Virus record (IMG/VR): IMGVR_UViG_3300042473_001265
Span: 62,001 to 126,000 of that record
Reading direction: 5' to 3' (one strand)
DNA length: 64,000 nt
Made by a program: the position numbers and the translations under genes. Positions within the stretch are counted from its first letter, which is position 1, and each line of letters opens with the position of its first letter. The notes under the pieces are model-generated. The model had not been told where the DNA came from. It searched no databases and worked only from the letters and a program-made list of their open reading frames with translations. Of the stretch, positions 47,883 through 48,095 are shown piece by piece.

Positions 47883-47911
47883 TTGACAACATTCTGCAAT
47901 TGTTGTATAAT
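47883..47911 (+). promoter_or_regulatory. internal sigma70-type promoter
   Basis: TTGACA-N17-TATAAT. Confidence 0.75.
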
Positions 47912-47933
47912 CAAAACTTAAACGAAAGACTAT

Positions 47934-47957
47934 ATGAAGCGAACAGCTAAAATGTAG
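47934..47957 (+). CDS. 7-aa mini-leader MKRTAKM upstream of tRNA-Lys
   Basis: AAG and AAA codons; stop abuts a hairpin that can pair alternatively with the 5' end of tRNA-Lys. Confidence 0.4.
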   Translation: MKRTAKM

Positions 47958-48019
47958 TGTCAACCCAGATCCCATGTCGGTCTGGATTGGCACTCGAAAG
48001 ACAATTCACGACTGAGTAT

Positions 48020-48095
48020 GGGATCATAGTGAAATGGTTATCACAGCAGACTTTTAATCTGCCAATTCCCGGTTCGAGTCCGGGTGGTCCTACCA
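48020..48095 (+). tRNA. tRNA-Lys(TTT)
   Basis: Loop CTTTTAA, CCA. Confidence 0.93.

Follow-up and report, generated by a model that had tools for sequence, protein, structure and literature searches.

A conserved leader with lysine codons and two alternative predicted folds precedes tRNA-Lys genes in uncultured phages

Results

The locus and its features. The DNA stretch analysed here (the window; 64,000 nt) is part of a very large phage genome (IMG/VR contig 3300042473_001265, 340 kb). From 39.0 to 49.8 kb the window carries about 30 tRNA genes, a GOLLD RNA, a permuted tmRNA and many near-consensus sigma-70 promoters, all on the + strand. One of these tRNA genes, encoding tRNA-Lys(UUU), is preceded by a sigma-70-type promoter, a very short open reading frame (ORF) and a hairpin that we call P1 (Table 1). 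The promoter is a 12/12 consensus match, one of three in the 12-kb tRNA region. The identity of the tRNA was supported by ARAGORN, by the Rfam tRNA model RF00005 (66.5 bits against a gathering score of 29) and by a cloverleaf when the gene was folded alone. P1 has a folding energy of -20.1 kcal/mol (z = -4.6), and none of 200 shuffled sequences was as stable.

Table 1. Positions in the window of the features of the leader and its tRNA gene.
Feature	Position	Strand	Description
Promoter	47883-47911	+	Sigma-70 type; TTGACA (47883-47888), 17-nt spacer, TATAAT (47906-47911); expected transcription start near 47918
5' leader	47918-47933	+	Short and A-rich; remnant of the family's Shine-Dalgarno site, with a 4-nt deletion between 47928 and 47929
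Mini-ORF	47934-47957	+	MKRTAKM; ATG at 47934, Lys codons AAG (47937-47939) and AAA (47949-47951, next-to-last sense codon), TAG stop (47955-47957)
Hairpin P1 (state A)	47957-47993	+	14 bp; first base is the G of the stop codon; lower stem GUGUCAA with UUGGCAC, upper stem CCAGAUC with GGUCUGG, 7-nt loop (47972-47978)
Anti-acceptor (region 2)	47968-47989	+	End of the 5' arm, loop and most of the 3' arm of P1; shared by the two mutually exclusive folds
Region 3	48002-48025	+	Last 18 nt of the spacer plus first 6 nt (GGGAUC) of the tRNA acceptor 5' strand; pairs with region 2 to form helix B (22 bp, two 1-nt bulges, three G-U pairs)
tRNA-Lys(UUU)	48020-48095	+	Encoded CCA end; presumed regulated product

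An alternative pairing between the leader and the tRNA. The first-pass annotation had described the promoter, the mini-ORF, the hairpin and the tRNA, all of which we confirmed, and had noted a complementarity between GATCCCAT (47968), inside the hairpin, and ATGGGATC (48018), which covers the acceptor 5' strand. This 8-nt complementarity is real but understated, as it is only the outer end of helix B, which has an energy of -29.4 kcal/mol and base-pair probabilities of 0.87-1.0 in the equilibrium ensemble. When the leader was folded together with the tRNA, helix B replaced both the hairpin and the acceptor stem in the minimum-energy fold (-57.2 kcal/mol, against -50.7 kcal/mol for hairpin plus cloverleaf). 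Folding of successively longer transcripts showed that P1 is the best fold until 48020 and helix B from 48026 onward, about 65 nt before the 3' acceptor strand exists. The pairing is more than chance would give, since the duplex energy between the leader and the tRNA 5' junction is -30.8 kcal/mol while the other 29 tRNAs of the window range from -6 to -24 kcal/mol, most of them between about -9 and -16 kcal/mol. The leader of tRNA-Gly(UCC) had the second-best score, but it folds into its own structure and leaves the tRNA free. A scan for similar Shine-Dalgarno-led mini-ORFs ahead of other tRNAs in the window found none with the same layout.

Close relatives and loss of the Shine-Dalgarno sequence. 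The close relatives L003, L005/L006 and L011 (viral contigs carrying the same element) keep the promoter, the ORF, the hairpin and helix B, and they differ from the window only outside the paired regions or by structure-compatible changes. The promoter reads TTGACA/TACAAT in L003 and L011, and in L005/L006 two changes inside the hairpin are compatible with it, an A-U pair becoming G-U and an inserted G adding a pair. In contrast to the rest of the element, the ribosome-binding site is not intact in the window, where anti-Shine-Dalgarno pairing is only -0.9 kcal/mol against a family median of -8.0 kcal/mol. L003 has AAAGAGGTAC at this place, and L003 and L011 have a good Shine-Dalgarno sequence (AAAGAGGT), while the window and L005/L006 share a 4-nt deletion there.

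The element belongs to a family. A search with the tRNA sequence brought in more distant contigs with the same layout, from which we wrote a pattern for the hairpin only. This pattern hits 82 viral contigs, and the same 82 when the TA of the stop codon is not required, as well as more than 120 metagenome contigs. In 596 Gb of bacterial and archaeal genomes it hits only five times, of which four are chance hits in GC-rich coding DNA with neither ORF nor tRNA and one is a true copy on a 7.5-kb MAG contig, and no host assignment was possible. Searches with blastn of the window region and of a tandem-class leader (see below) against 50,697 phage records found only unrelated tRNA matches or nothing. 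No Rfam family matched the 628-nt region after the tRNA, and the leader gave only chance-level hits with E of 2 to 7 against Rfam 15. There was no T-box hit at the gathering threshold in the window and none up to E = 10 in 47870-48030.

Conservation of the mini-ORF. Pooling all loci with enough flanking sequence gave 129 distinct true copies, of which 127 have ATG, Lys, one to four variable codons, Lys, one variable codon and then TAG. Of the two exceptions, one has a premature TAA (L153) and one has TAG changed to TGG (L205). The 127 ORFs spell 33 different peptides, such as MKRAKR, MKRGKL, MKRSSAKL, MKTGKQ, MKVSKP and MKLDKI, and are 6, 7 or 8 sense codons long, so that all length changes are multiples of three. 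Codon 2 is AAA in 101 copies and AAG in 26, and the next-to-last sense codon is AAA in 126 and AAG in 1, while the last sense codon takes 15 different values among the 63 viral variants. A Shine-Dalgarno sequence (GGAG or GAGG) at the right distance is present in 61 of the 63 viral variants, and about a third of the family members have a promoter similar to that of the window, ending 17-31 nt before the ATG (22 nt in the window). None of the ORF features was part of the search pattern. However, the pattern fixed GTGTC, AGATYCC, GGTC and GGCAC, so these bases are invariant by ascertainment, and many copies are related, so the counts are not independent events. A weak hairpin inside the ORF (P0) tends to leave the AAA unpaired, fully so in 39 of 60 ORF variants, but it averages only -2.2 kcal/mol (mean z of -1.7) and we do not rely on it.

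Association with tRNA-Lys. The first tRNA after the hairpin is tRNA-Lys in 125 of the 127 copies, usually 23-28 nt downstream of P1 and 57 nt downstream in three copies that have an extra small hairpin. In 16 copies, including the window, tRNA-Lys(UUU) follows directly, whereas in 109 copies tRNA-Lys(CUU) follows and, in nearly all the viral copies with enough sequence, tRNA-Lys(UUU) comes 3-7 nt after it (the tandem class). Of 154 tRNA-Lys genes in the fetched loci, only four unique ones lack the pattern upstream, and two of these, the second tandem pair in locus L044, share one divergent leader that has the same ORF plan (MKASAKQ) and a compensatory change in the hairpin.

Covariation in both folds. 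In P1, 96.9% of alignment cells are paired across the family, with double changes that include UA to AU in 12 sequences and CG to UA. For the alternative fold in the single-tRNA class, every one of the 10 variants can form a 22- to 25-bp helix B (-24 to -33 kcal/mol) that includes 5-7 bases of the tRNA, although the spacer and hairpin sequences differ at many positions. RNAalifold returned only P1 for these 10 variants, because indels break the alignment of helix B. In the tandem class, the 3' half of the hairpin has two targets. Its distal part (GGGUUGG) pairs over 7-10 bp with CCAACCC, which spans the 5' end of tRNA-Lys(CUU) (helix B1), with A:U to U:A changes and GGAUAG:CUAUCC or GGGAU:AUCCC compensations. 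A column-based count for this short helix gave only 72% paired cells, because MAFFT placed CAACCC in two registers, and B1 was therefore assessed by anchor-based tabulation and per-sequence duplexes. The proximal part together with the loop (GAUCCC, loop, GGUC) pairs over 13-18 bp with the 3' end of the first tRNA (GACCA), the inter-tRNA spacer and the 5' strand of tRNA-Lys(UUU) (helix B2). Here the hairpin loop and the spacer change together in sequence and in length, with seven or more such combinations seen, and 89.8% of alignment cells are paired. Cognate partners were better than permuted partners in 2000 of 2000 permutations for each of the three helices, and the same hairpin top against the junction of the next, non-Lys tRNA gave -6.2 against -23.2 kcal/mol.

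In full-length folds of the tandem class, the two helices stack into one long stem that encloses the body of the first tRNA. The minimum-energy fold lacks P1 in 44 of 47 tandem and 8 of 10 single variants, although the energy models ignore tRNA tertiary structure and base modifications, which favor the fold with P1, and the two states lie within a few kcal/mol of each other once the missing tertiary structure is allowed for. Masking the 5' arm of P1, as a ribosome at the stop codon would, moved the predicted fold from P1 plus acceptor stem to the anti-acceptor paired with the tRNA 5' strand in nearly all variants. No terminator-like site was found on the + strand between 47883 and 48095, and no U tract follows P1 or the spacer hairpin in any listed variant.

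Discussion

Our results corroborate the suggestion in the first-pass annotation that the leader is a lysine-specific translation sensor acting on tRNA folding or processing rather than on termination, insofar as both the mini-ORF and the alternative pairing are conserved and the pairing is kept through compensatory changes. The RNA has two exclusive predicted folds with the topology of a classical attenuator, in which the 5' arm of P1 (segment 1), the anti-acceptor (segment 2), the spacer end plus the tRNA 5' strand (segment 3) and the tRNA 3' strand (segment 4) form either helices 1:2 and 3:4 together or helix 2:3, which excludes both. In state A, P1 is closed and the tRNA cloverleaves are free to form, so that RNase P, which is expected to need an acceptor stem, can process them. 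In state B, P1 is open, its 3' half is paired with the tRNA ends and there is no acceptor stem. P1 is transcribed first and forms first, and state B is at least as stable but needs P1 to be opened. As there is no terminator in the element, RNA folding, processing or decay is the natural output.

We infer, with only moderate confidence, that a ribosome translating the mini-ORF decides between the two states. The fixed spacing AAA-NNN-UAG, with P1 starting at the G, is informative in this respect. With AAA in the A site, the first base of P1 is at position +12 from the P site, just beyond the unwinding site of the ribosome at about +11 (Takyar, Hickerson and Noller 2005), and a ribosome waiting for Lys-tRNA would therefore leave P1 closed and the tRNA free to mature. 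Two codons later, at the stop, the whole five-pair lower stem lies inside the ribosome, which would free UUGGCAC as a toehold for the anti-acceptor and trap the tRNA in state B. Slow Lys decoding would thus keep the tRNA or tRNAs processable and fast decoding would trap them, giving negative feedback of tRNA-Lys supply on Lys decoding. Translation of the ORF and the direction of regulation are inferred. It is also notable that most copies precede tRNA-Lys(CUU), which reads AAG, while the putative sensing codon is almost always AAA, read by the tRNA-Lys(UUU) that is the second gene of the pair in those copies. Lys at the next-to-last sense codon might in addition favor efficient termination (Mottagui-Tabar et al. 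1994), but Arg never replaces it here.

Other readings of the same data seem less likely to us. The bistable RNA could be real but independent of translation, helix B being a processing or decay structure, for example a two-turn duplex cut by RNase III or a timer that nucleates through the P1 loop, with the mini-ORF only loading a ribosome to protect or stabilize the transcript. The 22- to 25-bp length of helix B is the size of an RNase III substrate, the 7-nt P1 loop lies in the middle of the state B helix and could nucleate pairing without a ribosome, state B is the predicted ground state in most variants and the lineage of the window persists without a Shine-Dalgarno sequence. However, this does not explain why Lys, and specifically AAA, is held at a fixed distance from P1 while the neighboring codons vary freely, nor why the element is found before tRNA-Lys, and we consider it possible but unlikely. 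Somewhat more doubtful is a switch of the opposite sign, in which active translation promotes tRNA-Lys maturation, for example by preventing a default state B or by remodeling the leader, and stalling shuts it off. The sign cannot be read from the sequence and state B is predicted to be the more stable in most variants, but the ribosome covers the 5' arm of P1 and not the anti-acceptor, so its passage can only free the anti-acceptor, as in the masking simulation, and positive feedback on a tRNA makes less regulatory sense.

It is very unlikely that the ORF is untranslated and that P0 displays the AAA as a codon-like specifier for the tRNA-Lys anticodon in the manner of a T-box. The unpaired AAA in many P0 variants would fit this, but P0 is weak, start codon and TAG are kept in 127 of 129 copies, a consensus Shine-Dalgarno sequence sits at the right spacing, indels come only in multiples of three, and most of the downstream tRNAs have the anticodon CUU, which would not pair with AAA. 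We likewise find little reason to regard the copy in the window as a decaying relic, with the tRNA simply transcribed from the strong promoter. The deletion of the Shine-Dalgarno sequence in the window and in L005/L006 points in that direction, and this copy may be weakly translated or may no longer sense, but the ORF, P1 and all 22 pairs of helix B are intact, and an A-rich, unstructured 16-nt leader might still support some initiation in Gram-negative hosts.

The element resembles the leader-peptide attenuators of amino acid operons (trpL, hisL, leuL, pheL and thrL) and of pheST in having a short ORF with codons that match the regulated product, and overlapping RNA segments that form mutually exclusive helices, the first of them within reach of the ribosome. 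In contrast to those systems, there is no intrinsic terminator, the 3:4 helix is the acceptor stem of a tRNA, the regulated gene is a tRNA and not an mRNA, only two regulatory codons are present, one of them at a fixed distance of two codons from the hairpin, and the element occurs in phages. In translational attenuation (ermC, ermB, cat and cmlA), a ribosome paused in a very short leader ORF also remodels an adjacent hairpin without transcription termination, but the pause is drug induced and the freed sequence is the ribosome-binding site of a resistance gene, whereas here no protein gene follows, the target is a tRNA acceptor strand and the presumed signal is Lys decoding. T-box riboswitches likewise link gene expression to the status of one specific tRNA through alternative helices, but they bind uncharged tRNA directly through a specifier codon and the T-box bulge and control aminoacyl-tRNA synthetase or amino acid genes, while this element has no T-box match and an ORF that is Shine-Dalgarno led in most copies. 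Pairing of a 5' leader with the acceptor strand of a pre-tRNA can prevent formation of the RNase P substrate, and here such pairing is conserved, covaries, alternates with a hairpin and is coupled to an ORF, giving it the appearance of a designed switch rather than an incidental misfold.

tRNA-Lys is cleaved by the host nucleases PrrC and AriB (PARIS), and phage T5 escapes PARIS with its own tRNA-Lys variant (PMC11464382; PMC10264068), although those studies describe the tRNA itself and not a cis-regulatory leader. It is tempting to speculate that the leader is an inducible counter-defense. If an anticodon nuclease of the PrrC or PARIS/AriB kind destroyed cellular tRNA-Lys(UUU), ribosomes would stall on the fixed AAA codon, P1 would stay closed and the phage's own Lys tRNAs would be released for maturation exactly when they are needed, so that the phage would sense an immune attack through translation of a six-codon ORF and answer by switching on a replacement tRNA. 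We regard this as a tentative and rather unlikely possibility.

In conclusion, we find a compact and modular element of about 100 nt that is conserved in front of tRNA-Lys genes in well over a hundred uncultured phage contigs and that is best read as ribosome-mediated attenuation whose output helix is the tRNA acceptor stem rather than a terminator. As far as Rfam 15 and the searched literature show, no cis-regulatory leader that couples maturation of a tRNA to decoding of its own codon has been described. The element could also serve as a synthetic sensor of codon-specific translation speed. If the model holds, it extends ribosome-mediated attenuation from mRNAs to tRNA genes and shows that RNA folding of a tRNA precursor can itself be the regulated step. 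It would also give phage tRNA arrays, usually treated as constitutive cargo, a regulatory layer, and since tRNA-Lys is the target of at least two well-studied bacterial immune nucleases, it makes testable the concrete question of whether phages sense tRNA-directed immunity and respond to it.

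The natural variation among the leader copies includes two with a broken ORF, L153, with a premature TAA at codon 5, and L205, in which the stop TAG is changed to TGG, and these are possible loss-of-function alleles or sequencing errors. In the tandem-class loci, for example L033, the phage tRNA-Lys(CUU) genes begin with C1-C2-C3 paired to G70-G72. This is an unusual acceptor end for a bacterial-type elongator tRNA, and it is exactly the part that is matched by the GGG of the leader.

Features in and around the tRNA array of the window and in related loci
Location	Feature
window 38846-38893	SD-led 15-codon ORF
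window 38899-38975 and 42718-42790	Two near-consensus promoters, each followed by a hairpin motif
window 39723-42407	Protein genes inside the tRNA array
window 39723-40196	AAA_33-type kinase
window 40987-41589	Metallophosphoesterase
window 41907-42407	RNaseH-like protein
window 41683-41803	121-nt spacer before tRNA-Gly(UCC)
window 45008-45472	GOLLD RNA (197 bits)
window 45071-45145	tRNA-Asn embedded in the GOLLD RNA
window 47721-47788	Weak tRNA-like sequence
window 48096-48723	628 nt between tRNA-Lys and tRNA-His
window 48480-48592	Unit with a conserved core
window 49362-49767	Permuted (two-piece) tmRNA
window 50186-53767	Auxiliary genes
window 50186-51088	Gram-negative porin (Porin_4)
window 52442-53767	TctA tricarboxylate transporter subunit
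L153, about 96 nt from one end, - strand	Leader with a broken ORF
L205, about position 925, +	Leader with a broken ORF
L033:2674-2849	Example of a tandem-class locus

Elsewhere in the window, the same hairpin motif, GCA-CAAACGATCGAGTAG-TGC, follows both of the near-consensus promoters, suggesting a shared leader element of unknown role. The 15-codon ORF, MTAEEYWKWLHDNVQ, contains two Trp codons and lies just upstream of the promoter at 38899 and of tRNA-Ser, and it may be one of the other "sensors" of the first-pass annotation. The spacer before tRNA-Gly(UCC) folds into a stable structure of its own (z = -3.0 for the spacer and tRNA folded together), and although it gave the second-best leader/tRNA duplex score, it does not sequester the tRNA. 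The weak tRNA-like sequence, which scored 32 bits with the Rfam tRNA model but was not called by ARAGORN, is located between tRNA-Thr and tRNA-Arg(ACG), and both it and tRNA-Arg(ACG) are absent from the relative L003. The phage-encoded tmRNA has the tag peptide ANANTGEVTVSGKNVKFSARTAQRHSLAV and overlaps the end of tRNA-Pro.

The porin and TctA genes are unusual auxiliary genes and hint at a proteobacterial host. The kinase, metallophosphoesterase, and RNaseH-like protein could be an RNA end-healing or repair set, given that tRNAs are defence targets.

The stretch between tRNA-Lys and tRNA-His holds several units, each closed by the same long-range stem (CCATATA[A/G]AAACACA ... TGTGTTTCTATATGG). 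The conserved core of one unit is also seen after Lys tRNAs in the locus L083, and similar stems occur in the loci L029 and L060, while the relative L003 has only one 73-nt unit here. No Rfam match was found, and this looks like an undescribed family of small structured RNAs that ride behind tRNA genes.
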